Assembly (NCBI GenBank): GCA_028023455.1
Contig: JAQFVV010000006.1
Span: 14,756,001 to 14,820,000 of the forward strand
Length of the DNA stretch: 64,000 nt
Direction of reading: 5' to 3'
From: Epiperipatus broadwayi
Taxonomy: Eukaryota; Animalia; Onychophora
The notes below the pieces were generated by a model. The model had not been told where the DNA came from, ran no database searches, and saw only the letters and a list, made by a program, of their open reading frames with translations. Below are positions 1-61,820 of the stretch, in pieces. Each line of letters starts with the position of its first letter. The first letter of the stretch is position 1. Both the position numbers and the translations under genes were made by a program.

Positions 1-522
1 AATGCATGCCAAATGATTGTTTTAAAAATCCCTATTCAGTGCTCTTCTATTTAGTATTCACTGACTGGTTTCTAGCTTATGGCTTTCATCAGTAAGCAGA
101 AATCTTGGAAAAGTGCATTTAGATCTTTAAGGTCTAATGCACTTTCCTGTCCACATTATTGAACAGCATTGTATAAGTTGGAATCATGTGATAGAGTCAT
201 GTGATATAATATAAAATAAACCATCCCAATTTTTACATTACATGTGTTTAAGCCAAATCATTCTTTTCTGCTGTGTGATGATCAAGAAGCATGTTGCAAT
301 ATATTAATATAGCAATATTTAACTTGTTAATTATGTTCAAAATATACTAAGCTTTAATTCGACATTACAGTCGTTAGCTGACTTTCATTATAGATTACAA
401 TTAATCTTTATTACTTATGTAATTTAGCATTTAGAGTAAAAAGTAGTTGATGTTAAGGATATTTAAATATCATAAACAGTAAATCAGATATTTTATGCAT
501 TTCAGGGTTTATGTATCCATAG

Positions 523-665
523 GTCTTGTACCTAAAGTTTTGGTTATTTGTATCAAATACTTACCAAATGAAAACATTGAAGGCCCGTTAGGACTTCTTT
601 CACGACTTATTCTTGGAAATAAAATTTTTGTTTCCCAGTTTGTCAAATACATTCGAGAATATGAG
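523..665 (+). CDS. STK36: Exon of STK36/Fused-like kinase, C-terminal ARM/HEAT region
   Basis: Encodes (G)LVPKVLVICIKYLPNENIEGPLGLLSRLILGNKIFVSQFVKYIREYE, resembling the STK36 segment ELPISLLTRLAL..QFV (recalled). Donor GAG/gtaatt at 665/666, phase 0. Acceptor is catag at 522 or alternatively ttcag at 505. Confidence 0.72.
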
Positions 666-725
666 GTAATTTTTGTTATTTACTATTTTTTTTTTCAAAT
701 AAAGTGCTTTGACTTATTTATTGTT

Positions 726-922
726 AAATAAATAATCAATCAAAATAAGATTGAAATAAACTTATTAATAACTATATTATAATATTTATCGAACCGGCTT
801 TCATCTCCATTGAGAATATTTTGAGAAGGTCTCAATGGAGATGAAAGCCGGTTCGATAAATAGTATAATAGAGTTATTAATAATCATTTATTTCAGTCTT
901 ATTTTGATTGATTATTTATTTA
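726..922. repeat. Long near-perfect hairpin
   Basis: Arms of about 90 bp with loop 816-829. Core ATTTATCGAACCGGCTTTCATCTCCATTGAGA and its exact complement. Confidence 0.92.
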
Positions 923-1321
923 GGTATTTGTGATAACCTTATGGACAAATAATTTCTATTGGTTATTTGAACATATAGTAACTTATTTATTGTGTAAAAT
1001 GTAATTGAATATATCATTCACTCAAAAAAATCCAAAGATGTTTGAGAATTTAATTAATACGATAGGATAACAGTTTCATTTAATTGGTTAATTTGAGTTT
1101 TTTTTGTTTCTTTAATTGAAAATCAGTCTGAAAATTTTTAATTTTGAGCCTTCTATTTATTGTGATTAATTGTCTTTAATATATATATATAATTATAGGG
1201 AGATAAGTAAAATGTTATATATATATAAACAATGAGGATTGCCAATTCCTTAACAAGCTTTGTGATAAATGCTTAGCTAGAGAAAGCATTTAAAACATCT
1301 CTGTCAGGACCCCCCCTCCCA

Positions 1322-1364
1322 ACCTCTGACCATGGTTTCGTGCTCTGGCACTCCTCAGAGAGGT
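1322..1364 (-). ncRNA. Type I hammerhead ribozyme, family B, fully canonical
   Basis: Minus strand reads ACCUCU-CUGAGGA-GUGC CAGA GCAC-GAAAC CAUG GUC-AGAGGU. Stem I is 6 bp and stem II 4 bp, both perfect. Stem III is the palindrome ACCAUGGU. Predicted cleavage after GUC (1328/1327). Confidence 0.92.
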
Positions 1365-2198
1365 GCTAGGGTAGGTTCAGACAAAAACACTAACCCAAAG
1401 CCAAGCATTTAAATAAAAGTTTTCTATTGAGTGGAAAATCTACATGTCTTGAAACCCAGCTATCCAACTCAAATAGCTATATGGGGCTGAGAGATCTTCA
1501 GCCATACCATATATATATATATTGGGATAGATTGTTTTATGATCTACAACACTTACAAATATAAGAAACAGTCAGTATAAGAAAATTATGTATGTATATA
1601 TTTTACAAATTTTGTACGGTTTAGGCGCAGTGGTAGAAGTGTTAAAGTCGAGAGTTAAAGAATTTTGGATCAACGCTAAATGTTCCTTGCAGTGCTTGAA
1701 TATCATATGATCTTTTGAGTTATAAACTATTTGATTATTAATATTCCTAATTTTTATAGCATTTGTATATGACTATAAACACGTGTGCATTTTAACAAAC
1801 GTAAATATAAATTAAGATAGGTTATTAACAATTCGTTTTTGATTTCTACTTATCTATGTATTTACCTTGCAAATATTTGAAATTATGACTGGTATGAGTA
1901 ATGAAATCACTTCCATTATGCACTTCATATAATGCAACAATTTATTTTTCATACAGTTTCTATTGTTTACTGATCTTCCTCAGAGCTGTAATATACACGA
2001 TATATTTGTGTTTCAATAATATACTTTATTGTACGAATTAGATTACATGAATTTGTTGTTAACCAAAGTTATATTGTCGAAAGTACATGGTTTAAAATTA
2101 TATAGCTTTAGAGCAAACAGAAAGAATAATTAAAGAAAGGGATATGTTAAACAAACAATAAGAAAATAGTTGTTCTTGTTACAGAAAAGTCATAATTT

Positions 2199-3000
2199 GT
2201 TTTTTTTTAGGTTATGTTTTGTTTAAAGTTTTTAATAGTGACCATGTAGCAGCAAATATATCTGGATGTGCAATTTTGCCATCTCTGGCCTTTAATTGTT
2301 CAAGCTTCTTTGAGAATGTGGCTGGGTGCTTTGTGGTATTGTCTCCAAGGCAGAAAGTACATCTGGTGCACCAGAGACTATATAAACAAAAAGTTGCTGC
2401 ACGAGCTGCTGGTATTGAGCCTTTACTGAGTATCTCTAATAGGTTATCAAGTGTGATGTTATTTTGTCTATATGTGTTAATCATAATTTCTCGGGTATTT
2501 GTTAGGCCTATGCAGGTATGAAATAGGTGCTGTTGTGTTTCTTCTTCCCTGTGGCATAGGGAACAAACAGCATCAATTTTTTTGTAAAATCTGTGGTATT
2601 TAAGGAAATAGGAGATAGGTAGAGCATGATCATTTACCTTTAAAAGAAAGTCAAAAAATTTGGGTTCCATTGACCACTTTTTAAATCACTGCATTAAAAG
2701 ACTATTGTTCATATTTAGCATAGGTGAGTGAGGATATGTTGTTATGTCTGGGTATTGCATATTATAAATAGTCCAATAGGTGTATCTACCAACACCCAAA
2801 AAAGACACCTGATCATAAATGCTTTGAAGTTGGTTTACGAGCAAAGACAAATATCCGTGTGAAGGTGGTGGTCGGTCTGTGGGTGTTATTTGAAGAATGC
2901 ATTCAAGGGCTGGAAAACTTCTTATCAGTGCAGCTAGGAGTTTGTGAAAAATTTGTATGGAGTGAAGACCTAATCCATTTCTAGTTGTTGGAAGACACGA
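2199..3000 (-). mobile_element. 5'-truncated L1/Tx1-like LINE, 3' end
   Basis: CLPTTRNGLGLHSI motif near 2990-2950, then ORF 2212-2670 with a zf-RVT-type CSLCHREEETQQHLFHTC knuckle. A-rich tail at about 2199-2209. Confidence 0.8.
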
Positions 3001-3580: not shown

Positions 3581-4384
3581 TAAATTTTATATACAAATCA
3601 AAAGAATACAAAATATTTTTTATACATTCTAAAAACTTCACAAATTTTTCAATATTCTTGAAACATACCATAATTAATATTTGAATAAAAATATTTATAA
3701 TAAATGATTGTTTTTTTTATCAATGTCAGTTTTATTTAATAATTATATATGACTGATAGACACACAGCCATGATTGAATTGTCATTTGGAAAATATAAAG
3801 GTCGATATAATATAATTTTTTGCAAAATATTATATTTTTTATAAGAATATTGGTTAGAAGAAATGATGCCTGATGGCTTACTTATTGCTTATATAAAATG
3901 AGATAATATATATAAAACTGGTTATCTTGTCTGTCAATCAAATGTTAAAAGCTATCCAAATATAACTGGAAATTCATGGTATAGTACTAGTATATTCATC
4001 TTCCTTGCTATGACCTTGTGTTCAAATCTAGGCTAAATGAATCATAAATTTTTTTTAGGTCACAAAAAATAAAAGAAGTTTTTTGTAAGTAACTGGCTTA
4101 TAACAACCTAGTATTTAGTAAATGGATATCTATCTATTGTCAATTAGAAGGTAATGGTTCTTGGTTGATCTATGTTGATTTTCGCCATTGGCAGCAGAGG
4201 TACCTAACTTGTATTGTTATGCTTACCCTGTCTAAATTTTTTATCTATTGCCTGATGCTTTTTTGAAAATAGATTTTAAATGGTGAAATTATATCAGGTT
4301 ATATATCTAAAGGAAAATATGACTTTCTATTGTTCACAGACATCATATCATTACCCTTCTTTATGTGTATGCAAGCTGTTTACA

Positions 4385-4520
4385 CACAAGCAAAACTCTT
4401 CCTACAGTAGTGCCACTTAGTGCAAGCCAGAGTAATCAATGGATGCATAAATCTTCTTGCATCCATTGATTACTCTGGCTTGCACTGTGTGGCGCTACTA
4501 CATGTAGAGATTTGCATGTG
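4385..4520. repeat. Ribozyme-less hairpin made from the family A 3' segment
   Basis: Arms 4407-4447 and 4458-4498 are nearly perfect complements (GCAAGCCAGAGTAATCAATGGATGCA). Other partial family A pieces lie at 10-100(-), 14449-14575(+) and 17491-17571(-). Confidence 0.8.
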
Positions 4521-5775
4521 TGACATCACACTTACAGGAAGAAAGGAACAGACAGGATAGAAACCTGAAGCAGCTATTGTGACCAAATGATAAATTCTTG
4601 GGATTAGATTTTAATGGATAAAATTTTATACAGTCAGATAAAAAATTTGCATATCAATATATTTTTTAGATTATTACAATTTGATCTGCATGTGTCAAGC
4701 CTTTTGCACTCACAACTTTGACATCATCCACTTCAGATACGTACATTAATGATTATCGCTAATCATTTATTAACACTAGAAATTAGTATATCATATGTAA
4801 CCCAGATGTAGACTCTAAATCCAGTTAAAGTTAATATCTACTTTTTATGAATGATAATGGAACTTTAATTATATAAATTAATATAAATTTGTAAAAAAAA
4901 AAAATCATATGTTCAGCTACTTAGGAGATCAAATAACTTTTAAGTATTAAAGAGACAAGATTCCTGTAACAGGTTCATTCTATTAACAGAAATTTTTTAC
5001 CTTTCTTCAGCTAGGACTCGATCAAGGATTCGTTATTCTTTAAGTCTATTATTTTATCCCTGCAGTAAACTGCCCAGGGCAATATGGAAGCTAAATTGTA
5101 TGAAAGAAAAGCATGAGAATTTTGTTTGCCATAATTACTATTGACTAAAGATTTGTGATAAAAAAAATTATGGAATCGAAATTTGAAATTAAAAATATAC
5201 AGTATATTATTAATATTTTGTTAAACTGGTTCTTTTTTGGAAAAAAATATCAAATTGAGCAATAAATCTAAAGAGCATTATTATCCAATATAGTTGACAG
5301 CAGTGGTAAAATGAATGGCTTAAGAATTAAAGGTCTTGTGGTTGGGACATGATATGTTATTTACACAGTTTTAATGGCACATCATCTCCCGAGCATCTAT
5401 CCATTCAATTATTTATTTTACATCTGTATTAATACTTATTTGCAATACATTTTATAAACTACTGTGCGTTTGCAAAAATCTGTTCGAGGCAGTCAAATTC
5501 AGATAAATAATTATTATATTGATATAAAATATGAAAATTGTAATTTGTAAGATATGCATTTTCTAAATAATATAATTATACAATAAGGAAAAGGATAGAT
5601 GGCGCTTCAAATTTCTGCGCAGTTCATTGATAGTAGTATCATTTTACTTCTGTCTACTCTGGATTATCTGTGTAAGCGTGGTATCCATATTTTGAGATAT
5701 TTCTCCAAAACATATATATATGTACATGTACACACAATTTGTAGTAATAAAAGCTTACATTTATTTGTTATATAG

Positions 5776-5908: not shown

Positions 5909-6129
5909 GTTAGTTGTCATTATTTAATAATTTTTTAATATACTTATTCCTGTTGTTATTTACAGTATGCAATTACATTTTTAATAATAATAATAATAAT
6001 GTTTATTAAAATAAATACATTCATTGTATTCATTCATTTAAATACAGGTCAAAAATACAAATGTTATTCTTCTATTAATCCCTAGTTGCGCTTTTACGTA
6101 GAATTTTTTTATAACAATTTAGTTATTTA

Positions 6130-6768
6130 ACAGGCAAAAACTCTCCATATAGTAGTGTCACCTTGTGCTAACCAGACTAATCAATGGATTCCAGAAGGCT
6201 TGTGCATAAAATCCCTATCTAGTGCCTACTCATCCAATATTCCCAGACTAGTTTCTGGCTTGTGGTCTTTGTCAGTGAGGAGCCTAGGATCTGAGAGCAC
6301 TGCACCTAGATTTTAGGATCTAATGCAACCCTCCAGCAGCCACCTTTTATCTCTACTTAACTACAAAACTATGAGAATGAAATTGAAAACACAATAATAT
6401 TTTCAATCTAAGCTCAATAGCTTATGTAGTCATATGGGTCTGAATTTCAATTCAGAACCCATATATTTTGGTGACTTTGGCTCTTTAATAACCATAGCCA
6501 CTATTATCCTATTAGGCAGGATTGGTGTTAAACCACTAAACATCACATGATCACCATCTCATGCTAGCACATGATGAAGGCCACAAGCCAGAAACTAGTC
6601 TGGGAATATTGGATGAGTAGGCACTAGATAGGGATTTTATGCACAAGCTTTCTGGCATCCATTGATTACTCTGGTTAGCACAACGTGGCACTACCATATG
6701 GAGAGTTTTTGCCTGTTTAATAACAGTTATGTGCTAGCATGAGATGGTGATTATGTGATGTTTAGTAT
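6130..6768. mobile_element. Family A HHR retroelement, tail-to-tail fold-back insertion
   Basis: Minus arm with HHR 6241-6281 (CUGACAA, damaged) and plus arm with HHR 6568-6606 (AUGAUGA, 5' strand of stem I lost). 12-bp TSD TTTAGTTATTTA at 6118-6129 and 6769-6780. Confidence 0.85.
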
Positions 6769-6943
6769 TTTAGTTATTTACGTGAAATTTTAAATATCAT
6801 ACAAAATATGTTAATAATAATAGCAACAATAAATTACATTTCAATAATATATTAATTATATAATAAAAATGTAGGGAATTTTATGCAAACATCGCTACTA
6901 GGTTGCACAACATAAATACCTATGTAAGTATACTATACAGAGG

Positions 6944-7560
6944 CTAGTCTGCGGATATTAGATGAGTAAGTACTAGATGGAGATTTTATGCACAAACTTT
7001 TTTGCACCCATTGATTACTCTGGCTTGCGCTGAGTGGTCCTACTGTATGGGGAATTTAGCCTCTGTGCAAACAGCTTGGGTAAGCATAAAGAATGGCGAT
7101 CAGGTGATGTTTAGAGATTTAATACTAATCCTACCCAATAGAATTATGATGGCTCTGGTTATTAAAGAACCAAAGAGACCAAAAAGTATGGATGCTGAAC
7201 TGAGTTCAGATCTATACACAACTATACAGGCTAATGAGCTTCAATTGAAAACATTTTTGTGTTTTCAATCTGGACTCAAAGCTTTACAGTTAGTTAATAA
7301 GGTAAAAGATCGCTGCTGGAGAGTTGCATTAGATCTTAAGATCTAGGTGCAGTGATCTCAGATCCAAGGCTCCTCACTGATAAAATCCACAAGCTAGAAA
7401 CTAGTCTGAGGATATTGGATGAGTAGGCACTAGATGGAAATTTTATGCATAAATGTTCTTGCATCCATCGATTACTCTGGCATGCACTGAGTGGCGCTAC
7501 TGTATGGAGAGTTTGGTCTTTGTGTAAACAACTTAGCATAAAGAATGGTGCTCCTGTGAT
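6944..7560 (+). mobile_element. Family A HHR retroelement, head-to-tail 1.3-mer
   Basis: CTAGTC recurs at 6944 and 7401 (period 457). HHR at 7371-7412 is damaged (CUGAUAA, stem II broken). Confidence 0.85.
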
Positions 7561-7910: not shown

Positions 7911-8128
7911 TATATACAAATATTAAGCATTAAATCACCCCACATGGTTAAGAAATCCAGTACTTCCCTCTGTGAAGTAATATATAAAATACATTAGAGT
8001 TTGTATTTCAAAATAGCCAGATCAATTTTGAAATACGAACTCTAATGTATTTTATATATTAGTTCACAGAGGGCAGTACTGGATTTCTTAACCATGTGGA
8101 GTGATTTAATGCTTAATATTTGTATATA
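7911..8128. repeat. Long near-perfect hairpin
   Basis: Arms of about 104 bp with a 10-nt loop at 8015-8024. Confidence 0.92.
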
Positions 8129-9039: not shown

Positions 9040-10195
9040 TATTTATCATTTATCAGTTTTATACAAAATTTTTACCAATATAATTACAACTCGACTACAA
9101 TGAACTTTGGATTTTAACCAACCAAAAGAAGAAGCTTGATTAAAAAGTGGATTAGCACAGTGGATCATATCTAAGTATTAACAGAAGTTGTAGAAATGAC
9201 CAATGAATATAAGTTACCAATATGCTTTTGATTTTCGGATTATGAAACTGTTTGATTCTATAAGCAATTTCTGTAATGACTACGGTATTAAATCGTCAAG
9301 ATATAGGTCGAAATATTGCCATATTCATACAACAAGATGATCCATATCTCCAAAACTTTGTGCAACAGTTTTACACAAAGTATTTTACAGCTTAAAACCA
9401 TAAGCTAAGGCTAAAGGGAATACAAATAAATGGAGATTATTTAAGTCATGTGCATTTTGCAGATGATGTAATTGTTTTTGCAAATAATGCTTCAAGAAAT
9501 GTTACAAGAATTATCAGACAAAAGTAATAACGTTGGTCTAAATATAAACACTAAAAAAACTAAAGTAATGTTCTGTGAATTTTCCCAAAAGAAGACAATA
9601 AAGATTGATAATGATGAATTTGGAGAAGTTGACAACTTTGAATAATATCTTGATCAGATTATTAATTCATATGGATGAAATTAATCGTAGAATTAAACTT
9701 GGTTGGAATGCTTTTGATAGAAATAACTTAATATTTAAAAAAAAATATGTCTATGTGTTTGAAAAGTAAGATTTTTAAAAATTGTATTAACCAGTTCTTA
9801 CTTATGGATCTGAGACTTGGACATTTAACACAAAATCAATAGAGAAACTTCAGATCACTCAATGAAGCATGCAGATGTGTGTGTCAGGCGTAGCAAGAAG
9901 GGATTGAAAACAAAATACATGGGGGTTAGAGCAAACAGCTATTACTGACATCATTGAAAGAATTAAAAAGACTAAAGTTGAGTTGGGTTGGACATGTTGA
10001 TAGAGAAGATGATAATAAATGGATAATTGAAATTTTAAACTGGATTGCAAGAATCTGTAAAAGATCTAGAAAGAAATAGATGGATGAAATAAAGAAGTTT
10101 CCTAATGTGGTGTGGAGAAGAGAGGTTAGAGATTAGAGAAGGTGGATTAACCCCTTGAAGAGACCTACAATGTATTAATTATGGTTGAAACTGAT
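9040..10195 (+). mobile_element. RTE-clade LINE relic (RT to 3' end)
   Basis: Decayed RT motifs (HVHFADDV, LTYGSETWT, LSWVGHV..EDDNKW) and the RTE-type 3' end. Confidence 0.85.
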
Positions 10196-10965: not shown

Positions 10966-11232
10966 AAAAATAATATTAATATCATCTATGTTCTTTATTA
11001 CTTTTTACAAAACTTTTTTACAATCCACTATTGACAGTTTTGATTGCCCCAGCAATCTTCATCAGAACTATAACAAACACAATACAGATACATGTATACA
11101 AATATACATGAACATGTGTATTGTGTTTGTTACAGTTCTGAAGAAGATTGCTGGTGCAATCGAAACTGTTAAAATGGGTTGTAAAAAAGCATTGTAAAAA
11201 GTAATAAAGAACATAGATGGTATTAATATTAT
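10966..11232. repeat. Family D fold-back element
   Basis: Inverted arms of about 105 bp, each ending inward in an HHR-like core (11028-11070 minus, 11133-11175 plus). Confidence 0.75.
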
Positions 11233-11513
11233 ATGGATTTGGCAATGCAATATGAAAGATAAAATTGTACAAATAGATAGAGAGAAATGAAAATTCAGTT
11301 TATTTCGAAAAGGCATGATATTTGGTGAGGGGAATGATGGCTTCATGAGATCTCTATAACTGTAAGAAATGATGGGCTTAGAGTTTTCTCTGAATTTAAG
11401 AAGTAAATCTGCAGACATGGTTACAGACACACATACATATATAAAATACATAAACTGCTAAATTCAGCACATTGCTTAAAACAAAAAAAAGCACATGTAA
11501 AAAGCAAACAATC

Positions 11514-11555
11514 CCCAAGATGCATTTCTGGCAGAACTTGCCATCATCAGTAGGC
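11514..11555 (-). ncRNA. Type I hammerhead ribozyme, family C subtype, core intact
   Basis: GCCUA-CUGAUGA-UGGCA AGUUC UGCCA-GAAAUGCAUC-UUGGG. Stem II is 5 bp, stem III is the palindrome AUGCAU, the cleavage triplet is AUC, and stem I has a U-U mismatch. A decayed paralog lies at 12654-12696. Confidence 0.78.
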
Positions 11556-11839
11556 TCAGTTCTGTAGCAGCACATATTTTCACCATCATAGTTTAGTATT
11601 TGTCCATAGTTGGCATCTATATTTCAGTTTCCAAGTGTGACTCCACTTAAATGTACTCATTTTGATGATATTGTCTAGGATGAATATTAATTCTTATTTC
11701 CTAGTCATTTTTTTATTGGGTTGTAAATTGTTATTTAATTTTCTATCCCAACTATAAACTTTAAACCTGGTAAAGATTAATATATTGCTTATTAAATTCC
11801 AGCATGAAATCATACAATTATTGTCTTTTCCAGATTATA

Positions 11840-12590
11840 TAATGAAACTTTTTATTACTCCTAACATGCTTCTCTCCATACTTTATTAAAAGGTCTGAAG
11901 TCTCTGCATTGCCCTTCTGTTAAGTGTCCAAGATCCAGTAAGAACTGGTAAAATACATTTATTAAAAAAACCTTCCTTTTCAAACACATAGGCATATTTT
12001 CTTTAAATATCAAGTTATTTTTATCAAAAGCATCCAAGTTTAATTCTATGATTATTTTATTCCATTATGTTTCCATCTGTATTAATAATCTGACCAAGGT
12101 ATTTGTAGTTTGTTAACTTCTTCCAAGTCATTATTATCTACTTTCTTTTTCTGAGAAATCCGTTGAACATTACTTTAATCTTTTTAGCATTTATCTTTAG
12201 CCTATTTTCTTATCCTCATCAGATAACTCTTGCAACATTTCCCGAAGCTCTAAAGCACAATTTAAATCTAGATCAAAAACATGTATTTTGAAAATTAAAT
12301 ATATGGCTGAGAGAACAAACAGATGTTATTGACATATTGAAATAATTAAAAAATTGGAGTTGGGAAGGACATATCACTAGAAGAGATGATAATAGATTGA
12401 CAGTTGAAATCTTAAATTGTATTCCAAAAGACCCAGAAAGAGACCACATATGAGATGGATGGATGAAATAAGGAAGTGTGCTGGGGTGATGTGGAGAAGA
12501 GAGGCTAGAGATCAGAGAGGATGAATTAAACTTGGAGAGACGTTCATCCTGCAGTGGATCGATAATGGTTAGAAATGATGAGATGATAAT
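11840..12590. mobile_element. RTE LINE with 5' inversion
   Basis: Minus piece 12270-11840 (RT to SMERSMLGV) and plus piece 12305-12590 (WLREQT to the 3' end) are adjacent in the RTE consensus. Confidence 0.78.
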
Positions 12591-43720: not shown

Positions 43721-43762
43721 TCCCCAGACTAGTTTCTAGCTCATGGCTTTCATCAGTGAGGA
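43721..43762 (-). ncRNA. Type I hammerhead ribozyme, family A, intact
   Basis: UCCUCA-CUGAUGA-A AGC CAUGA GCU A-GAAAC UA GUC-UGGGGA. Compensatory G-C to A-U change in stem II. Lies in a partial family A copy at about 43690-43830. Confidence 0.87.
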
Positions 43763-45463
43763 TTTATCAAACACTAACATCTGGCATCTATTGATTACCA
43801 ATGGTTACACTAGGTGGTATAACTGGTGAGAGAAAGAAGAATTTGCTATTAAATGGCATAGTGCAGGCTGGGCTTCACATGATGCCTTATTGGTTTTAAA
43901 CTTTATTCTTTTATTAAGCGTATACACCCATATATTTAAAATTTGTTTACGTATATGTTATTAGTTATAGTAAAAAAATAGAATAATATTGTCAACTTTA
44001 ACCTCTAGATATGGACTGAGGCAATTCAGAAAGTAGTTTGTTTTTGACTTTTATGTGTCATCATGTCCTAATTTTCAAGATATCAACCATGGAAATAATT
44101 TGAAAGTAGACAAATATTTTTATGTTGCGTGTTAATTCAAAACTTTAATTAATAGAAAATAAAAGTAGAATATATACCAGATTGGAACTAGATAGTAACT
44201 TATTTACTTAGTGCTGGTGCAGATGCTGTATTCAATTTAAGTTTACAAATCTTCTTATAAATATTATTAAATTTTATAAAACTGTCCAAAACAAACTGAA
44301 TAAACAAAAATATTATTCAGAGAATGTAGAAAATAAGCATACAAGAAAAAGACATTTTTTTTTTTTGAATTTTGACACTAATGTTATTTATCAATTGTTT
44401 CATCAATCACACATTGTTAAATTTTTATAATTTTAAAACCATTTAAAACATTTTCTCCTCTTGTAAACATTAAACAATTAAAATTCTTAAAGCTAAGTAA
44501 AGAAACTTAGCTATTTGTAAACCTACAATAGTTAAAGTAGTGCATGTGGCTTCTAGTGTGTGTGTGTGTCTATTGTTGGAGGGTTGGTAAGTTGGTTTAG
44601 TCGAACTTCATTATTTTATTTTCAGAATTGTGTTAATCATTATATTTTGTGTTAATGATGATAATAATAATAATATGATTAGCTGCTTGGAAGGTCATGT
44701 GATGTTTGAACACTATTGTTAGATTAAGCCCAACTGACTGATTTTTTTTTTTATTCGGCTTAAAATACTTAGCTCTGAGTCTATTACTTTGCTAAACTGC
44801 ACAAGTCTATTGGGAGTTCGTTTTTCATTTTTTATATAATTTTTAGAAATATTTATGCAAAATATATATATTTTTTTCACTGTATATAAATTTTTGCTCT
44901 TTTGGTCTCTGACTCAAATAAAAAGTAAAAACATTTCTTGTAATTAATGTGAAAAAATATTTGTGCAGAGTTTAAATATAAAATTTCATAATATTTATTG
45001 TACCAAGTATACTTTCACTGCTTTCATCTCATATTCAAGGTCAGTCTGCCGGGAACAATAATTTTTTGATGTGGATGCTATTAGTTATTCGATTCATTAT
45101 GTATTCGTATTTCTTATTTTACATTTGTGATTGTTTCTCTCTTTGCAAACAACTTTAACAGCACTTGGATTATAGCTATGACTGTTTTCTCTCATGATTA
45201 TGAAGGATGGATGAATTAAATGCTTTAGGCTTAATCTTAGATTTTTTTATATATTAATGGGTGTTAAATCATTTTAGTATGTTTATTATTTTATTTGAGA
45301 TAAATGGTTTAGAACAGTGTTGATTTTAGTGCATGTTAATTTCAAATTGTTTTAGTTTTATCAGTAGTATAGACCCACTACCTAAACTATAGTTTTCAAA
45401 ATTTCTCATACCTATTTTAGAGTGTGAGCATATCTTGCAGTGATTTTTAGTGAGGTTATATAA

Positions 45464-47809: not shown

Positions 47810-48180
47810 ATAAATAATATTTCTGCAGTTTAATTTTCACACAGGATAGGGACTGGTTTCTATCCACTTTTAACACTTTGTGGAGGGTGTAAACATATGA
47901 TCAAAGACATGTGAGTATGATCCCCAAGATGTGCATTTATCACTTGTCCCAGACAATCTATGCCTATCTTTATCATTGCTCAGATTTTTATCTGGGCTAA
48001 CTGATGAGTGCTGCTTCAGCATGAAATGTGCATCTTGGAGATCATGCATTTTTTTTACATGTCCTGGGTTATATGTTTATGATTACACCCCTCCACAAGG
48101 AATTAAAAACAGGTAGAAAACAGTCCCTATGTTGCATGAGACTGGCGTAGTGAAAATTACCTACTGAAGTATTAATTAAA
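47810..48180. mobile_element. Family C HHR element, fold-back copy
   Basis: Imperfect inverted arms around 47950-47990 with an intact HHR in the right arm. The 3' part is homologous to 57010-57150; another decayed copy lies at 50395-50530. Confidence 0.78.
47997..48038 (+). ncRNA. Type I hammerhead ribozyme, family C, intact
   Basis: CUAA-CUGAUGA-GUGCUG CUU CAGCAU-GAAAUGUGCAUC-UUGG. Stem II is 6 bp, stem III is AUG/CAU, predicted cleavage after C48034. Confidence 0.85.
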
Positions 48181-48924: not shown

Positions 48925-51095
48925 CTGAAATATAGAACGTTAACTTTTCCAGTTGTCTTTTGGAAATAGGAAGTGTTTTTATTTTTCTGGAAAATATGTA
49001 TTTGGTACGTAAACACTACATATATACGATTTCGCTGATGGAACTGATTATTAGTTCAATTTTTATGCGAATGTATGTTGGCTTATGTTTGAAATATATG
49101 TGTACACACAAACTGCGCATGAACACACATATGCCAGATCATTTCTAGTGAGTAAAGTGCCTTCATGCGAATTATTTTTTTTTGATATAGCTTATCTAGA
49201 ATAATTTTTGATTTTTCAAGTTGCTTAATTTCACATCCATTCTTTCTGTGATAGAATTCATCTACCTCGTTGCAGGTTGGCCTCTAGAATGTATCTATCT
49301 TGTTCCAGGTTGGCCTCTTCTTTCACCATCAATCTCTATTCATTCCTTTTCTTTTTTGACTAATATTTCCAAGCATTTATATACCTTCATAATGAATTAA
49401 AAATCTTATATAATAATCCCAAAATAGTGGTTTCAGTCTGGTTATTTGTCTTTCAAACCCAAGTTCAGGTTTATCTGAATAATTATACGTTTCAATCTGA
49501 ATAATTATCCGTTTCTTTATTTTCTCACAAAAGTTCAATATCAAATTTCTAAATAGAAGAAGCATAAAATTGACAAAATTCTATCAGAAACTTAGTATTT
49601 TAATGTTCTTTGACCGCCTTCTGTATTCTTTCACATAGACTTGATATATTATTACTAAAAGAAATACTATTAAAAATTGTGTTGGTAGAAAGGAAGGAAT
49701 GGTAGAAGCTGATTGGATTTGACTTATATATAGGACGTATATGCGCAATGATTTCCCAAATTTATTGAAAATGAATTGGTTATCTTCTATTAATTCTGTT
49801 TAGTATATTTGCCCTAATGGAGAAATCATAACCCAGATGGATAAAGAAATAGAAAAATCAAAATTTTATTACTATACTTATTTGACTGACAGAAATTTCA
49901 ACACTAAAGAAAGGAAACTTTCATCTATCACATGCTTGAACATTTATTCTATTACAAATACTAAAATGGGTAACAGGGATTCATAGTAAAAACAGTAGCA
50001 AACAGTACTGCCTTTTGTTATATTAATGAATCATCTGTTTTAACATACAAAGAATGATAAAGTTAATCTTTTATCTGACAAAATAGCATTGATATAACAA
50101 AAGGTGGCGCTGTTTGCAAGTTTATTTAAATGATTCTTTAGGAATGGAGCTTATGAATTTCTGTGAATAGATTTATATTCTTAGCATTACATATCTGATA
50201 AGTTGGAAGATTATTTGTATGCTCCTTAAAAATCATTAGTACTTCCTGAGGATGTGTACATGTGAATCATCAGAAGAAACACCATCTGGGTTTCTACTAT
50301 AATATATATATAATAAATACATGTATAGTGTTTATATTTTATGCTAGCTGCAATTAGAGGGAATTTGAACCCGGACTGATTGTATATATGTGTGAGAGGT
50401 GATGGTCCGACCAGCTGATAGGTGCTGGTTCGGCATGAGATGCATGTATTGGAGATCATTGGTGTTTTTCGTAGGTGTGTGGTCATGCATATTAGTTGTG
50501 CATGATGGGGTGGGTGGCTTAAAAGAGCTTGAATGACTGGATTCAAACCCCCTCTAATTATATATATTGAGGAAATTTAATGTGGAGAAAAATCAACAGG
50601 ATTAATCATGTTTTGAGGCAAAGAAATTATGAAAAAGTACATTAGTAGAACTGTGGAAATAAATAAGAAATAAATTGCTAGTTGAAGGGGAGTATTTGTA
50701 ATTATTTTAAAAGTTGAGCAAGGGATAGAATGATTCAGAAAAGGTGGTCAAGTTTTGGAGAGCAAGACTAGCCTTTTGACTGATACCCTATGATAATACA
50801 ATGATGTCAGTGAAGTTCCAAACAAGGTTTTGAATAAGAATAATGAAACATCCAATTGGGAATATAGCCTAGCAGTTGAAAATGATTAAAAATGAAAGGA
50901 AGGAACTGATTTTGCACTTTTTTTCTTACCACAGTTCTGCCATCTAGTATTAGCATTACTAATCAATAGATGCCTGATTCATTCATTGTATAAACTGAAG
51001 TCAGATGAAGTCTTGGGATACTGTCCCTTTTGTTGTGAAGATGTTTTAAAGAAAATTAACATTTCCTAGTAGTAATAAATTGGCTTTTTTTTCAT

Positions 51096-52346: not shown

Positions 52347-52507
52347 AAACCACATCACATGATCACTATCTCATACTAGCACATAATTGTTATTAAACTA
52401 TTCAAAACAAAGCAAAACTCTCCATATAGTTGTGCATCCATTGATTGCTCTTGTTAGCGCAAGATGGCACTACTATATGGAGAGTTTTGCTTTGTTTTGA
52501 ATAGTTT
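52347..52507. mobile_element. Ribozyme-less miniature fold-back derivative of family A
   Basis: Both family A termini joined as a hairpin. 12-bp TSD TATAAGTAAATT at 52335-52346 and 52508-52519. Confidence 0.8.
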
Positions 52508-53592: not shown

Positions 53593-55379
53593 TGGAAAAT
53601 AGTTTTTTAATTCCAATGTTCAGGCTTCTAACTAAATCATTATATGTACCCAGCAGAATAAATTAAAAATGATAATTAAAATATAATGCTTTGCTTAATT
53701 TAGTGCAATGATAGTGTATCAGACTTTTCATCTAAGATTTCTGGGTCAATTCCAGTTCTGATACTTCCTGCTCTCCAACTTTTTACGAACTCCCAAGCAA
53801 TAAAGACATTCGATGACTTAATATTATTAAAAATGATAATAACTGCAGTATATTTTCACTTATTAAAATGAACAAATAGAAAACTAAAGTGATAATTTAA
53901 GTCTTATAAGAAATGACAAAGATGTCTCCGTCGTTGTAACATCTGCCTTCATTGCACAAATCTTAATTTAGTTAGAGAAAGTGTTTAATATTCAATTTGT
54001 TCACAGTTAGAAGCCTTTGTTGTTGACCTCGTATTTTCTACAAAATTATTTGAAACTACCGGTAATGCCTTTTAATTACGATAGAGTTTATCATCTTCAT
54101 TCTGTTTGACACTTTGGAGGATTATTCGATTAAAATACACATACATGCACAAAAATAAAATCATAAATACTGATAAATATACCAACATTTTATGTTTTCT
54201 CAGTTTATGCATATTCTTTCAAGAGGAGCTCTTTTCACTCAATTCTAGGGCTATTTAGAGTAAGCTTGAGTAATCGTTGGATACCAGATCATATAGTGCT
54301 ATAATATGCACATGTCCAGATTAGTTTCTTGCTTGTGCCTTATGAATTGAATTTCAGGTTATAATGATTGAATAATATAAAAAAATAAATTGGATGCTAG
54401 GTGTATAAGTTTATTAGTTCCAAGTTTGAATCTGATATCCTCACTTATGAAGGCAAAAGTCAAAAACAAATCTGGCGATTTGTATACTATAGCACTAATC
54501 TATCTGATATCCAATGATTACTTAAACTTGTAGCAAATGACTCTAAATAGAGTAAAGGAAATTATGAAGAATATGGGTAAGCTCAGAAAAGTATATATTA
54601 AAAATATAAAAAAATAATAGTAAAGGAACACTATTCTGGAAAGATTAAATTTCATAAAATATTATTTCTAAGCATTGCTTTCACCTAACTTGGTCATATT
54701 CATACAACTACTATATTAAAGTTGTTTGCACTGAGCGCAATGATCGAAAAAGGAACTATAATGAGGCATGGTTTATAAATCTATATAAACGTATAATAGT
54801 TCTACGAATATGACCTACCTAGGCTAAAGCAATGCGTAGAAATAATATTTATTATATTTGTAATCTTTCCGGAATAATTTACCTTTACTATTATTTTTTT
54901 ATATTTAAATTAAGGAAAGAAATATTATATTGAGTTATATGATATTGTTTTTTGTATTAGTCTTCCTAGCCAAAAGGTTGAATAGGACTATAATTGTATC
55001 TATATTTGTTTTATTTTTATGTTAATTATGTCTTATTGCAAATATTTTTTTAAGTAAATCATATCAGAAATAAGTGTGTATGATAAAAATGTATGTTAAT
55101 TAGAGTTTTTGTTATTATATGTGAATTCAAAGGTTTGTGTAAAGGCTTGGAACTGAATTGCCTCGAATACGAATGGAGACCTTTATATATGTGTATAAGG
55201 AAAATTAATGCAGTCAAGAAAATCAGTCTCATAACTCAGGTCTATGTTTCAAATATATGTCATCCTTCTACTAAAGTTACTATTAAATATTGCATTTTTT
55301 TACTATTAATTACCCTAGTGGAAGGATAGATTGCTGTTCTGTATTATTTTTTATTTACGTTTGGTCTCTTAGTTTCTGC

Positions 55380-56340
55380 TAAATAATTTGACATGTAAAA
55401 ATATTTTATAAATGTATTAAATAAGCTCCACACCAACATACATATGAATAAATCTACATCAGTTGGCCCACTCAGGTACTTTTATTATATGTTCAGTATT
55501 TATCAATAGTAAATTTCTACCTTTTGATTGACAGATGTCAAACTCATTCCACCCACAACTTTGATACCATCCATTCTAGATAAATACAGTAATGATTATC
55601 ACCAGTCAGCTATTAAACTAGAGATTGTCTTTAGCCCAGATATAAACTTTAAACCTCAGTTAAAGATTAATATATCTGATTTATTTAATTAAACACAAAC
55701 TTACTATGTTATTCGCATTTCTTTTTCCCATGTGTAATATTCTTTATAATACGAATTAACCTCTAAACCTGCCCCCAAGATGCATTTCATACTGAATTAC
55801 CACTCATCAGTTGGCCCAGGTTATCATCTCATATGTAAAATATTTAACAATAGTAAAATTGTTACATTTTGATTTACAAGTATTAAACTTAATCCATCCA
55901 CAACTTTGACATCACCCACTGTAGATAAATGCAGTAATGATGATCGCTAACAGTTATTAAACTAGAGATGGTCTCTAGTGCAGATATAAACTTTAAACTT
56001 CAGTTAAATATTTATATATCTGATTTTTTAATTAAGGGCACACACATATATGGAGTTATTCATATTTCTTTCCCATGTGTAATATCTTTTATAATGTGAA
56101 TTAAACAATCTCCACACATTCTTTTGAAATCATATGAATAAAGATATAATAAAAGATAAATACCCCCCCCCCCCCAGGTGCATCTTGTGTTCATCAGTTG
56201 ACTCAGGTCACCATCTCCGGATAGATATCTTTATCATATGTGTAGTACTTTTCAATAATCGATTGTCACATTTTGATTGGCAAGTGTTTGAAATTTCTAT
56301 TTTTAGAATATGCGTTGCATAACAATTCTTTTTTAAAAAC
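55380..56340 (-). repeat. Tandem array (about 2.5 units, 350-390 bp) of a family C HHR-bearing unit
   Basis: CATCAGTTG core recurs near 55457, 55805 and 56192 with homologous spacers. A spacer homolog also lies at about 4680-4850. Confidence 0.78.
55775..55814 (-). ncRNA. Hammerhead ribozyme, family C, core intact with weak stem II
   Basis: CCAA-CUGAUGA-GUGGUAAUUCAGUAU-GAAAUGCAUC-UUGG. Confidence 0.7.
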
Positions 56341-56974
56341 TGATAATTTTTATTACTTTGAAAGTATAATCTTAAAAATGTTATGTAGATTTACTCGCGA
56401 AGGAACTATTTACAACTCATAACAAAGAGACACTATTTTTATATATATGGAAAGTTGTGGATATATAATACACTTAGAGACCGGGGTGTAATTAAAAACT
56501 TAAAATGTTTGTTGAAATTAATTTTCATTTCTAAAATCGAACATGTGATTCCAGTATAGGAATTATTTGAAATATAACGAGTATATATTTTCTAAACATT
56601 GCATCATTTTCTCTTTTCTTGTTATAGGCATTTAGGAGCAGAAATTCCCTCTCTTCTGGAGCCACCCATTGTTAGCTTAAATAATCAATGGCATTAGATG
56701 ATAGCACTATTATAAATATATCACCATTCTACTTTCTGATTTATGGACTATTTAATGAGTACTAAACAAGGCCTGGGTTTGAACTCGTAGGCTGTTTTTG
56801 ATTTTCATCTTGGGGATGATCACTACATGTAAAATTCCTCATTGAAAAAGGCTATGCACTAGAAACTGATCCGGAGGTTTTAATAATTTTTATAATGAAT
56901 AAATTATGTGGTGTTAATTCCCTATCTATATATACTGAGCAAGAATAAGGACGTGTAAGAGAATGTGATCTGGG

Positions 56975-57016
56975 CCAACTGATGAATGCTGGTTCAGCGC
57001 GAAATGTGCATCTTGG
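56975..57016 (+). ncRNA. Hammerhead ribozyme, family C, near intact
   Basis: CCAA-CUGAUGA-AUGCUG GUU CAGCGC-GAAAUGUGCAUC-UUGG. A-C mismatch at the first pair of stem II. Confidence 0.78.
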
Positions 57017-58894
57017 GGATTTTACATCTTTTTAACATGTTTGGTAATATGTTTATAATTACACACTCTTCCACAAGATGTTAAGGTGGCTAGAAACTAG
57101 TTCCCACCTTGTGATAGAGTTGGGTAGTGAAAATTACACTACAGAAATATTAATCTGGGAATGTTTGCACAATAGCAATAAGCTCACACTAGATGGCTCT
57201 GAAATAGAACGATGGATTTCTGCTCCTAATGCAGATGTTAAAAGTAAGAAGAGTGTGTTTTTTGATGTTTACAATAGGTTGTTTTGCAATAATATAAATA
57301 AAATGAATTATTGTTCCTAAAGCATGAAATTTACGTTTAAACTTTGGAATTAAAACAAGATGTAAATTTGTCATTTGGATGAGGCGGTAATTATGATAAA
57401 AAAATCTTGAGAAAAACTCATAATTATTTTTTTTAAGTAATTTCAAAAGTTTAATTTATCTTCTTTATTCACTAAAAAGGAGTTTTATTTTTAAGGTTTC
57501 TTAAATTCTCATGTTTAACATAAATTAGGAAATACATTTTCATATTAATGCTTATTTAAATATCTCTAAAATAGTATTATGTTTTACATTGATTTCCTCT
57601 CACGATAACCAACTCTGGTTGATCTCTTACATTTTTATTGCAGTACAATAAAGAACCCAAAAACTTTTTAAAATGGAAAATGTTGGTTTAAAAAAATATA
57701 TAATTAAATCAAAACCTATCCTTGCTGCATCTAGATTTTTACATTTTTTAAAGTAGCAACCAAGAGGTTTTTCTGTTTTAAATATTGTGTATTTTAATGT
57801 AGAACAATATATCTTTTCAAAATAAAGTATAAACTAAATGAAAAATGAATTTTTTCATCTGATTGCCAATATCTTTTGTAGATAGCAGACTTCATATTTC
57901 GTAGTGGTGAAAGACCACATCAGCTGTATTTAGCAAAGCCAATTTTTACAGTTTATTTTTTCTGATTATATTTAGCGTTTTGCAATGGTGCAAAATGGTA
58001 AGATTGTGTATTGTATTATTTACAATAGTAGAATATATAAAAGTGAAGGATGCTTTTGATCAGAACAAATGAACATTTGAAAATTATCACCGGAAGGTTT
58101 AATGCCAAAATTGATAATTGATTGAAAGATGAAAGTGCTGGGAGTAAATTTGGTTATTGTGATACAAATGAAAACAACATATACTTGAGGAGTTGCAGAA
58201 AAAAAAAATGACAACCGCATGTTATGGAATCTTTCTTTGAGAAAAATGCTAAATGAAAATAGACATGGAAACATCTAAATGAATGTCCAGCAGGGTTGGA
58301 ATATATTTTGACCAACAAATAGTATCTATTTAAAGGTGGTAATATATTTAATAAGTTCCACACAGAAAGTGTCAGTGGATGGAAGCTACATATTAATTCA
58401 AAACTAGAGAGACATAAAGTATTAAGAAAGTCGGTATTAACAATTGATATGTCTAATCTTTGGAAAACACTTCATTGAATTTAAATTAGAACTTGCAAAT
58501 CATTTTAAAATATTAACAGATTTTGAAAGTGACTCAGACTTGAATGAAATCAATAAGAAGATAAGTGATACTCCATTAAGAATTGCAGCAAAGATAGTTA
58601 ATACAAAAAAAGCAATAACCAACCAATAAAATTTCTACTGAAACAAAATAATGTATGAAGAAAAGAAGGAATATGGAAAATTATTATAGTCCATTAATAA
58701 AAATAGAATACCAAGAGATTTGTAGAATAGTATGAAAAAGTGTTAATAATGATATAAGAAATATAATCATACATGTCAGAGAAAGTTATAGAAGAGAATA
58801 AGCCTTCAAAGTAACAGGCAACACCCTAGCTTTGCAAGAAAAATTATTTCAGAAATAAGAAGAAAAAATTAACTATTATTAAAAAGAGGAATAA

Positions 58895-59223
58895 TAAACC
58901 ACTAAACATCACATGATCACCTTTTCTGTATGCTTACACAAGCTGTTAAAATATTAGCAAATTCCAAACAATAGTGCCACCTAATGCAATCCATAGTAAT
59001 TAATGGATGCAAGAAGATTTTTGCATAAAATCCCATCTAGTGACTATTCATCCAATATCCCATATCCAAGGCTCCTCATTGATGAAAGCCACAAGCTTGA
59101 AACTAGTCTGGGGATATTAGATGAGTAAGCACTAGATGGGATTTTATGCACAAATCTTCATGCATCCATTGAGTACTATGGCTTGCACTAAGTAGCACTA
59201 CTGTTTAGAGAATTTGCTACTGC
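58895..59223. mobile_element. Family A fold-back copy nested in an RTE LINE
   Basis: Minus arm 58895-59062 and plus arm with HHR 59073-59114. Interrupts the RTE ORF relic between the endonuclease and RT regions. Confidence 0.82.
59073..59114 (+). ncRNA. Hammerhead ribozyme, family A, C3U variant
   Basis: UCCUCA-UUGAUGA-AAGC CACAA GCUU-GAAAC UA GUC-UGGGGA. Stem II is 4 bp; the core has C3 to U. Confidence 0.72.
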
Positions 59224-60971
59224 TAAAAAGAAGGATAACATCAGTAAATGTGCGGAAGACTTTTATAAGAATTATAATAAAGAGCAAGAAAACAAAGTGT
59301 CCTCTATAATTACTATGTCCATTGAATTTTCAAGTATTTTAAATGAAGAGGTAGATGCAATTAAATCTATGAAGAAGGGAAAAGTTCCAGGTAATGATGG
59401 AATTATAATTGATATCTTAAAAGAAGCATGTGAAGAAATTAATTTTTTTTTTGGTTAAACTGTATATAAAATGTCTAAATGGTAAAGTTGTGCTAAATTA
59501 TTGAAAGAACGGAGTAGTAGCACTGATAAATTTAAGAAAAGTCATAATGAAGATAGTAGAAATTGTAAACCTATTTGTTTTATACAAAATCTGCATGATG
59601 ATAATTACAACTGGTCTGCAATAAACTTTGGATTCTAATCAATTTAAAGAAAAGTTAGAGAAAAAACTAATGAATATGAATTGCCATTATGGGTAGATTA
59701 TGAAAAGGCATTATATAAGCATTTCTTCAGAGATTAAAGCATTGGATCATCAAGATCACAGGATGTTGTCATATTCTGAAGAATAGTTATCAAAATGCAA
59801 CAGCAATGATTAGATTATGTAATACTATTAACAAGATCAACATTGAGAAAAATATGTCACAGAATGATTCCATATCTCCAAATCTTTTTACAGCAGTTTT
59901 ACAAGAAGTATCTTATGGATTAAAATGGGACACTCGGGAAATAAAAGTAAAGGGAGATTATTTAAGTCATTTATATTTTGCAGATGGTATAATTGTTTTT
60001 GCAAATAATGCTTCATAACTTTGGGAAATGTTGCAGGAGTTATCAGATGAAAGTAAGAAAATGGGACTAAAGGTAAATGCAAAAAAAACTAAAACGATGT
60101 TCAATGGATTTTTTCAAAAGCAAAAAAAAAATAAAGATTAGTAATTATAAATTGAAAGAAGTTAACAACTACAAGTAGCTTAGTCAGATTATTAGTATAG
60201 ATATGGAATATATAGATAAAATTAATCATACCATTAATATTGGATGGAATGGTTTTGATAGAAATAATATATTATTAAAAGGAAATATGCCTGTGTGTTT
60301 GAAAAATAATGTTTTTACTATATGTGGTTTGCCAATTCTTACCTATGGATTTAAAATTTGGACACTTAACAAAAGAGTAATGCATGGACTTCATACCATT
60401 TAAGGAAGCTTGGGGAGATGTAGTATATTAGGAATAATAAGAGATCAAAAATGAACTACATGAATGAGAGAACATATAGATATCACGACATCATTGAAAG
60501 AATATGAGAGATTGAAATGAATCGGAGTTGCTCATATTGCTAAAAGAGAAGGTAATAGATGAAGTGCAAAGACATGACCGATGTCACTAGAGGTTCATGA
60601 TAACTGGGCAAAGTATTAATCTAAGTTACTGAAGTCTGTAATATAAATAGATGTTCAATGCTTTTTCATTTATTCTATATTGCTTATATTCAGTGAATCT
60701 TTAAAAATATCACTTCTTTACCACATTTTACAATTGTATTTTAGATATCTGAAGAAAACTGCTAAACAGTCGAAACTATCGGATAATAAAAAGTATTATG
60801 AAAAATGCAGACAAGGGTGTGCTTTTTTAAAGAGATTTATTTAATTAATGTAAAAACTAGTTAAAAAATAAAATGAATAAAGAGCACAAGAAACTGAAAA
60901 GAAAAAAACAATATCTAATCTTCAATAAATCAGTATATTCTATAAGCAATAGAAAATAATATTCATTAATA

Positions 60972-61820
60972 CAGTAGCAACTTAATCTATACGATATTGC
61001 CACTTAGTGCAAGCTATAGTAATTAATGCATGCTAGAAGATTAATGCATCAAAATCCCTATCTACTGCATATTCATCCAATATCTCCAGACTAGTTTATG
61101 GCTTTCATTAATGGTGAACATTGGATTTGAGAGCACTGGAACTAATGTGTTTCTCTAGTAGCCGCTTTTTACCTTTTTAATTTACTATAAACCTATGAGC
61201 TCAAATTGGAAACAAGGTTTTCAATCCAAGTTAGTTCATTTGTACATTCATACAGATCTAAACCCAGTTCAGTACCTATACATTTTGGTGCTTTTGGCTT
61301 TTTAATAATCAACGTTCTTTGGCTAGGATTGGCACTAACCCATTATAATATCACACGATCACCATTTTTTACATTTACATACATAATACCAACTTTCTTC
61401 ATATAATACTGTCACCTAGTAGAAGGTATAGCAATCGGTGAACACTAGATGATTAGATCTGCATGACTTAACAAACAAATTAGCTTGGATTGAAAACATT
61501 ATTGTGTTTTCAGTTGGGACTCATAGCTTTATAGTTAACCAAAAAGGTAAAATGTGGCTAATGGAGGGATGCATTCGATTCAAAGATCTAGATGCAGTAC
61601 TCTCAGATCCAAGGCTTCACACTAATGAAAGCCATAAGCTAGAAATTAGTCTTGAGATATTGGATGAGTAAGTACTGGATAGGGACTTTAATACACAAAC
61701 TTTCGAGCATTTATTGATTACTATGGTTTGCAATAGATGGCACAATTGTATGGAGAAAGTTGATACAGTTTTAACAAATTGTGTTAAGAAATGGTGATCA
61801 TGTGATGTTATAGTGGTTTA
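60972..61820. mobile_element. Family A large decayed fold-back copy
   Basis: Minus arm about 60972-61420 and plus arm about 61460-61820 with HHR 61616-61657 (CUAAUGA, damaged). Confidence 0.8.

Follow-up and report, generated by a model that had tools for sequence, protein, structure and literature searches.

Animal retrozymes without long terminal repeats (non-LTR retrozymes) carry a type I hammerhead ribozyme in non-coding tandem repeats of 150-450 bp, and the class is defined experimentally by being expressed as both linear and circular RNA (PMC7229834; bioRxiv 10.64898/2026.07.22.740005). In newt and axolotl retrozymes, helix III of the hammerhead is minimal and the ribozyme is weak alone, but it is active as a dimer through an intermolecular helix III (PMC7229834). 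Minimal hammerhead ribozymes (min-HHRs) of Penelope-like elements (PLEs), with examples published from Schistosoma, Drosophila, rotifers and other animals, are marked by a nucleotide that separates position 9 from 10.1, a G10.1-C11.1 pair, a long helix II and a minimal palindromic helix III, while helix I is short, down to 2 bp in Drosophila virilis (PMC4209133). Most min-HHRs occur as single motifs, for which a probable relation to truncated PLEs is suggested; where the motifs are dual, they lie 100-700 bp apart on opposite strands (PMC4209133). Here we describe a 64,000-nucleotide stretch of Epiperipatus broadwayi DNA (contig JAQFVV010000006.1, positions 14,756,001 to 14,820,000; hereafter the window), an AT-rich segment (GC 0.26-0.33) of a 5.6-Gb animal assembly, for which an earlier note had proposed at least four families of hammerhead-bearing repeats. 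The window most probably contains five or more families (A-E) of short non-coding PLE-type retroelements, in degraded and some intact copies, with a type I hammerhead motif located ~60-170 nt 5′ of the element 3′ end. Families A, B and C would fit retrozyme-like elements, and families D and E would fit non-autonomous modules of very small size or, alternatively, solo 3′ ends left by autonomous PLEs.

Hammerhead motifs of five repeat families

The core pattern CTGANGA-N4-30-GAAA occurs 26 times in the window against 3.9 expected, and 26 matches were reached in 0 of 100 shuffles. A strict minimal type I descriptor combined the core, a helix II with 3 bp or more, the GAA, a self-complementary helix III beginning in A and ending in U, H17, and a helix I with 4 bp or more. 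This descriptor is matched at seven window sites versus none in 100 second-order Markov controls, and a rerun with 40 controls had the same outcome. Three of these sites belong to family A (18935-18964, 23976-24005 and 43727-43756, all on the minus strand), one to family B (1328-1358, minus strand) and three to family C (48001-48034(+), 55779-55810(-) and 56979-57012(+)). With the core and all three helices in type I order, these matches uphold the topology that the earlier note had assigned.

Degraded copies, added through short-query BLAST and alignment, bring the total to ~27-28 motifs or remnants, roughly one per 2.3 kb and close to the 30 or so first proposed. Family A accounts for 16-17 of them, in line with the ~16 copies previously counted, and family E for one. 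The three copies of family B and the ~8 copies each of families C and D in the earlier note are reduced to one, five and six motifs proper, respectively. The family C motifs comprise three intact copies, a rare variant and a decayed copy, with further C body fragments that lack the motif; the family D tally includes both arms of two inverted pairs plus two singles. Most window copies are dead, with core and helices both intact in ~8 of 27.

Genome-wide, exact core-pattern matches number 57,244 for family A, 12,154 for B, 8,777 for C and 5,985 for D, with copies of all four dispersed over many contigs, and 44 copies of family E have an intact 3′ half. The reversed-pattern controls gave 0 for each of the five families. 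The proposal of at least four families is borne out, with E as a fifth, and the families are unrelated outside the ribozyme. Also upheld are a high copy number in the genome and, on the copies, marks of retrotransposition as in PLEs and animal non-LTR retrozymes (PMC4209133, PMC7229834, PMC8557442, bioRxiv 10.64898/2026.07.22.740005).

Family A combines a 6-bp helix I (UCCUCA/UGGGGA), the core CUGAUGA, a helix II of 3-4 bp (GGC/GCC or AGC/GCU) and a 6-nt palindromic helix III (ACUAGU). The family B motif has a helix I of 6 bp (ACCUCU/AGAGGU), the core CUGAGGA, a helix II of 4 bp (GUGC/GCAC) and an 8-nt palindrome, ACCAUGGU, as helix III, and family C pairs a 4-bp helix I (CCAA/UUGG) and the core CUGAUGA with a 6-bp helix II (GUGCUG/CAGCAU) and a helix III palindrome of 6-8 nt (AUGCAU or AUGUGCAU). 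These are the same stems that had been quoted for the three families. The core C3-U4-G5-A6-N7-G8-A9...G12-A13-A14...A15.1-U16.1, with H17, is complete in seven A, B and C window copies and in D copies. Helix III in families A-C encloses a palindromic tetraloop (CUAG, CAUG or UGCA) and is made up of A15.1-U16.1, to which a C-G pair is added in A and B. This arrangement resembles axolotl HHR_Amex1/2, in which a helix III of one or two pairs also ends in a palindromic tetraloop and which cut as dimers. Published hammerheads of newts, retrozymes and PLEs share this architecture, for which activity is known only through helix III pairing of two motifs (PMC7229834, PMC4209133). The units, measured from cleavage site to cleavage site, are 457 nt (A), 434 nt (B) and ~400 nt (C) long, with a GC content of 0.39, 0.38 and 0.30, and no long open reading frames were found in them. 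When the three units were compared, no similarity was detected beyond the ribozyme (best E 0.8), and all 11 core nucleotides are retained in each family together with complementary helices of differing sequence.

Family D has an extra A after A9, a G10.1-C11.1 pair closing a helix II of 5-6 bp and a helix III of ACUGU, and its subfamilies are distinguished by helix II (GAUUGC/GCAAUC versus GACUG/CAGUC). Because these traits match the published list for min-HHRs (PMC4209133), family D is read as a putative PLE-type min-HHR motif. Similarity among D copies begins abruptly ~10-15 nt 5′ of the motif, and sequence further upstream is subfamily-specific. The window contains two head-to-head D pairs. 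The first, at 19400-19745, has motifs at 19485-19519(-) and 19620-19654(+) of the form CUGAUGA-A-GACU../..AGUC-GAAACUGUC, and the likeness of its arms continues ~86 nt beyond the motif. The second, at 10970-11270, has a motif at 11138-11170(+) with helix II GAUUGC/GCAAUC and another at 11035-11065(-) in which G12 is mutated. Single motifs are located at 43316-43348(-) and, slightly decayed, at 60749-60777(+). In the fetched genome loci, family D is mostly found as one arm by itself (28 of 30 loci) and not as a pair.

Family E was found by relaxing the core pair in the descriptor and is absent from the earlier list. It is represented in the window by a head-to-head pair (730-925) with a motif at 821-854(+), whose core is UUGAGAA (U3-A8) and whose helix III is AGCCGGUU. 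In the left arm, the truncation point falls inside the motif. An extra G lies between A9 and 10.1. Among the 44 genome copies, A8 is present in 43 and U3 in 41, indicating that the core pair has been exchanged across the whole family. Such a U3-A8 covariation of the core has been published for PLEs of Cercyon (PMC4209133), which family E resembles in this respect. The modules of D and E span only ~110-130 nt. Both families share with PLE min-HHRs the extra nucleotide, G10.1-C11.1, a helix II of 5-6 bp, a helix I of 2-4 bp, a minimal palindromic helix III, motif pairs on opposite strands and a poor fit to the standard model. In contrast to PLE min-HHRs, helix I is longer in families A-C, and the extra nucleotide after A9 is lacking in B and C.

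Insertion structure and copies in the window

The structure of insertions was analyzed in 98 fetched genome loci plus the window. Similarity between copies stops at one or two fixed 3′ positions and fades gradually in the 5′ direction, a pattern of 5′ truncation as left by reverse transcription that begins at the 3′ end. The fixed 3′ ends lie at ~+110 and ~+165 nt past the cleavage site in family A, ~+100 and +165-175 nt in B, ~+95 and ~+125 nt in C, and ~+65 and ~+105 nt in D. Since these ends are located 60-170 nt beyond the cleavage site, the ribozyme is not the maker of the template 3′ end; if acting, its role would be to trim the 5′ end or to free single units from a multimer. Two pairs of families have nothing but their terminal 3′ motifs in common: in A and B the short end reads ...CTGTTT and the long end falls just beyond a TCATGTGAT box, and C and D both terminate in ...ATTATAT.

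Head-to-tail arrays are frequent, with periods of 456 nt (A), 434 nt (B) and 400-410 nt (C). Up to five consecutive same-strand matches are listed, with up to four same-strand units per locus, and units within one array arm are ~99.5% identical. Close opposite-strand pairs in the fetched loci are all in (-,+) order, with their 5′ ends facing. This order was seen in all five families, and a hand count gave ~20 such pairs versus one (+,-) pair, formed by two family A members of the window, at 22999(+) and 23982(-), with a distance of 983 nt. One long and one short arm were present in six of six readable A/B composites and also in a D composite; the composites with this asymmetry include loci L043, L047, L062 and L029 (the D locus) and the window regions 6119-7560 and 23808-24536. 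The one-sided tail is 45-70 nt long, and the inner (5′) ends of the arms are variable while the outer (3′) ends are fixed. Target duplications surround the entire composite in L047 (GAGTCAG) and in L029 (~13 nt), and a direct duplication in this position indicates that a composite is one insertion event. An ungapped comparison had hinted that the arms derive from different template RNAs; this was ruled out by a gapped comparison of each composite, which gave 96-100% identity between the two arms near the motif in young composites. An (AT)n setting was observed for the window B copy and for locus L071, so that a microsatellite bias is anecdotal.

Published PLE insertions show strong 5′ truncation, partial tandems and an inverted 5′-truncated copy at the 5′ end, and the tail, of 30-40 bp, is often at one end only, with a bias towards (TA)n (PMC8557442, and Evgen'ev & Arkhipova 2005 as cited there). 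The insertions described here match this architecture in their 5′ truncation, partial tandems, inverted 5′-truncated partner, one-sided tail and target-site duplication round the whole unit; they differ in a tail of ~45-70 nt and in that the elements are non-coding. Non-autonomous PLE derivatives share merely the 3′ end with their partner (PMC8557442). By analogy with published retrozymes and PLEs, dimeric hammerheads would cleave multimeric transcripts of the families after GUC, and the resulting unit RNAs would possibly be circularised by a host ligase and may then be copied by the reverse transcriptase (RT) and GIY-YIG endonuclease of autonomous PLEs, the putative partners.

Three family A hammerheads in the window are intact. 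The first, at 18927-18972(-) within an element of ~18812-19092, has helix II GGC/GCC and a predicted cleavage after GUC at 18935. The second, with N7 = C (23968-24013(-)), lies in the left arm of the composite at ~23808-24536, which carries the long 3′ end (tail); the right arm has the short 3′ end and a remnant with the core CUGUCGA (24368-24413(+)), with 97% identity between the arms in the motif region. The third, at 43719-43764(-), belongs to the A-U subfamily, with helix II AGC/GCU. A further copy at 27874-27919(-), in an element of ~27775-28184, has an intact core and one helix I mismatch. The head-to-head composite at 6119-7560 is built of one (-) and three (+) units, in which every core is mutated or truncated, with motifs at 6238-6283(-), 6563-6608(+), ~6940(+), as a remnant, and 7369-7414(+). 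The spacing of its (+) units is 349 and 457 nt, and the short 3′ end is found on the (-) arm and the long one on the (+) arm.

The core is mutated in most family A window copies, usually by one or two changes. Remnants with an intact core are located at 55-100(-), where helices I and III are mutated, and at 22991-23036(+), where helix III is mutated, in an element of ~22661-23194. Both cores are mutated in a minus-strand tandem pair (26481-26526 and 26910-26955, 429 nt apart), and C3 is changed to U at 59071-59116(+). Two remnants at 61086-61118(-) and 61614-61659(+) are again in (-,+) order, and those at 41419-41464(-) and 54311-54356(-) are heavily degraded. At 4382-4546, only the 3′ tails of family A are present, arranged head to head with both arms truncated downstream of the ribozyme; a second tail-only pair (52405-52498) gives a weak Rfam score as a miRNA-like hairpin.

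The family B element spans 1222-1514(-), is 5′-truncated, lies between (AT)n runs and has a short-type 3′ end (...CATTGTTT). Its hammerhead (1320-1366(-)) is intact, with predicted cleavage after GUC at 1328. The intact family C copy at 47993-48042(+) has helix III AUGUGCAU and a helix I of CUAA/UUGG with one G-U pair; helix I is CCAA/UUGG in the two other intact C copies. These are found at 55771-55818(-), with helix III AUGCAU and a C body that reaches ~56287, and at 56971-57020(+), in (-,+) order with the copy at 55779, ~1.2 kb away. A C-like variant (11495-11574, motif 11525-11550(-)) has helix II UGGCA/UGCCA and one helix I mismatch, and a remnant at 50386-50486(+) holds a dead copy with a mutated core near 50420.

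Pairing evidence and competing explanations

As read from the alignments, covariation appears between families, whose helices differ in sequence and stay complementary, and is weak or thin within them, where there is one compensated pair, in family A. Cross-family alignment with MAFFT misaligned the 3′ half, and pairing across families was therefore read by hand. Between families, helix I opens with A-U and has U-A as its sixth pair in A, whereas these two pairs are U-A and A-U in B. The helix II switch between the D subfamilies also counts towards compensation. Within family A, only pair 10.2-11.2 is dimorphic (G-C 12, A-U 10, G-U 2, unpaired 2), and a hand count of the first 100 A genome matches gave 71 G-C, 26 A-U, 2 A.C and 0 G.U at this pair. 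The claim that the stems are kept by compensatory changes thus holds between families; within them it fails, except at this pair of family A. The C-like copy at 11525 differs from the main form by three pair-preserving double changes in helix II. As evidence of compensation, its UGGCA/UGCCA subfamily is weak, with only 4 genome copies. Copies within one repeat family are, moreover, non-independent samples of covariation.

Several results weigh against a functional ribozyme or a PLE-type assignment, the thin covariation within families among them. No compensated changes were found within family B, where the variation consists of wobble-compatible transitions that CpG decay alone could yield. 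In family A, the usual G10.1-C11.1 is replaced by A.A or U-A; in about one-sixth of the first 100 genome rows, position 10.1 is a U and would form a pair with A11.1. Helix I of family D has merely 2-4 A/U pairs. Although the lowest-energy homodimer of both A and B is a double hammerhead with an intermolecular helix III, in keeping with dimer action, the homodimer energies were no better than those of shuffled sequences, and RNAalifold on monomers returned helix II alone in common and not the hammerhead fold. The min-HHRs of PLEs themselves show little or no cleavage in vitro (PMC4209133), and no PLE reading frame was found within 1.5 kb of a motif in the 98 fetched loci or the window. The earlier note had suggested a search with Rfam RF00163; a scan of the window with this model and its relatives, at the gathering score and at E<=10, returned no hammerhead, although the motifs are real by the descriptor. 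This silence is likely because helix III is almost absent. The top sub-threshold Rfam matches are miRNA-like hairpins that correspond to head-to-head element pairs or to a Stowaway-like miniature inverted-repeat transposable element (MITE).

A possible, if rather unlikely, alternative is that the copies, chiefly those of D and E, derive from autonomous PLEs that were extremely 5′-truncated at insertion, so that each is a solo 3′ end, or pseudo-LTR piece. The sharp start of D similarity just before the motif, with upstream sequence that differs by subfamily, and the small size of the D and E modules are consistent with this idea, as is the published picture of min-HHRs as mostly single motifs related to truncated PLEs, or as dual motifs on opposite strands (PMC4209133). 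Candidates for the PLE endonuclease are also plentiful, as a genome search with Pfam GIY-YIG returned at least 10,241 candidates with open frames of up to 901 aa. However, families A, B and C occur in head-to-tail arrays of 400-457-nt units without a reading frame, and the 1.5 kb on either side of the motif held a PLE frame in 0 of 98 loci.

It is unlikely that the hammerhead-like motif is kept as a structural or sequence signal for the RT, or as a relic, that no longer cuts RNA, in which case the elements would not be ribozyme-driven. The slight or absent in vitro cleavage of PLE min-HHRs (PMC4209133), the position of insertion 3′ ends beyond the motif instead of at the cleavage site, the lack of G10.1-C11.1 in family A and the lowest-energy fold of the D monomer, which is a plain hairpin with an internal loop, all speak for this possibility. 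Against it, the 11 core nucleotides are all kept in three otherwise unrelated families, helix III is palindromic in every family, as dimers require, and comparable newt and axolotl motifs cleave well as dimers (PMC7229834). The matched swap in the family E core (U3 in 41 of 44 copies and A8 in 43 of 44) would, in addition, be difficult to account for if the active fold, with its C3-G8 tertiary pair, played no part.

It is highly improbable, and already largely refuted, that the repeats are DNA-level products with an incidental hammerhead likeness, either unequal-crossover satellites or hairpin MITEs with terminal inverted repeats (D, E and the A-tail pairs): several pairs do fold as long perfect hairpins that Rfam scores as weak miRNA- or MITE-like, and the near-identity of array-arm units is equally expected from local duplication, but D loci are overwhelmingly single-armed, inner arm ends are variable and outer ends fixed, orientation is nearly always head to head, the tail is on one arm, tens of thousands of copies are scattered over many contigs, and chance cannot yield seven full motifs in 64 kb. 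A MITE-type transposon with terminal inverted repeats was rejected in particular for D, E and the hairpins, since one arm alone is present in 28 of 30 D loci and the inner ends vary.

Partner genes, neighbouring features and implications

The min-HHR of a PLE forms part of the pseudo-LTR of an element that encodes RT and GIY-YIG, whereas no such frame was found beside the copies examined here. The sole RT among the 98 loci is encoded by an element resembling a long interspersed nuclear element (LINE) in locus L084. This LINE (L084:1595-2882(-)) has an RVT_1 domain and a C-terminal '...RWMDEIRKCAG..W..A.DR..W' tail, and a 5′-truncated family C copy abuts the end of its frame; a protein-atlas search with the tail gave no useful taxon. 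Contigs from four runs over 18700-24600 contain A and D repeats alone, at high word depth, and leave unique DNA uncovered; the kind of run is uncertain, none being recorded as RNA, and these contigs are silent on transcription.

Newt satellite 2 and Schistosoma Sm-alpha resemble the families described here as abundant short repeats with a type I hammerhead and a weak helix III, with dimer action reported for theirs (PMC7229834, PMC4209133). Sm-alpha, however, is a short interspersed nuclear element (SINE) with an RNA polymerase III head, and an ARAGORN search of the window and of 26 C, 4 B and 4 A loci, which may miss degenerate heads, detected none that is tRNA-like. Family C as a tRNA-headed SINE was rejected on the same result for its 26 loci and the window. 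The one tRNA-Ala, in L084, lies ~900 nt from the family C copy, on the opposite strand.

Other repeats were noted in the window. 3′ ends of the LINE seen in L084 are located at 10042-10132, 12421-12511 and 39438-39528. Short open frames with zf-RVT similarity are found at 2212-2670(-) and 20406-20804(+), the second above the Pfam cut-off (E 4e-9), and contigs of two runs cover 20499-21129. A perfect 130-nt hairpin at 7953-8086, with termini GTACT(T/G)CCCTCTGTG, is unrelated to the hammerhead families; it resembles a Stowaway-type MITE and is scored as MIR1120/mir-7563 at E 1e-7, below gathering. A local direct duplication links 32226-32538 and 33276-33602, which are ~1,050-1,064 nt apart and 84-96% identical.

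Compared by description with published retrozymes, families A-E are best taken as additional members of a known element kind, and no new kind of element is revealed. The sequence-level traits examined were apparent in them, apart from an Rfam score and adjacency to a PLE gene, with covariation thin within families and helix I of family D short. Like animal non-LTR retrozymes, they include non-coding head-to-tail units of 400-457 nt with low GC (0.30-0.39) and a type I hammerhead, their copy number is in the tens of thousands, and reliance on PLE machinery is proposed for both. They are unlike these retrozymes in the A.A or U-A at 10.1-11.1 of family A and in that copies are mostly single, truncated or head-to-head instead of forming long arrays.

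The 3′ ends shared by A and B and by C and D may mark the signals of two lineages of Penelope RT, or the core variants of families A and E may be naturally active, or both; we regard this as quite doubtful. Such shared ends would act as template-recognition and second-strand priming signals, and the one-sided tail of 45-70 nt would mark the arm made first. If either proposal is true, PLE integration or the core tolerance of the hammerhead would be testable with natural sequence sets.

Rfam scans overlook tens of thousands of real hammerhead motifs in this animal genome, and because scans of this type miss such motifs, ribozyme censuses built on them undercount. For genome annotation, the families should be masked as PLE-dependent non-autonomous retroelements, and not as satellites, MITEs or miRNA hairpins. 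They also provide a natural test set for dimer-dependent cleavage, with five motif architectures of which two are unusual at the core or at 10.1-11.1, and another for the poorly understood integration of Penelope elements, through their head-to-head composites, one-sided tail and flanking duplication.

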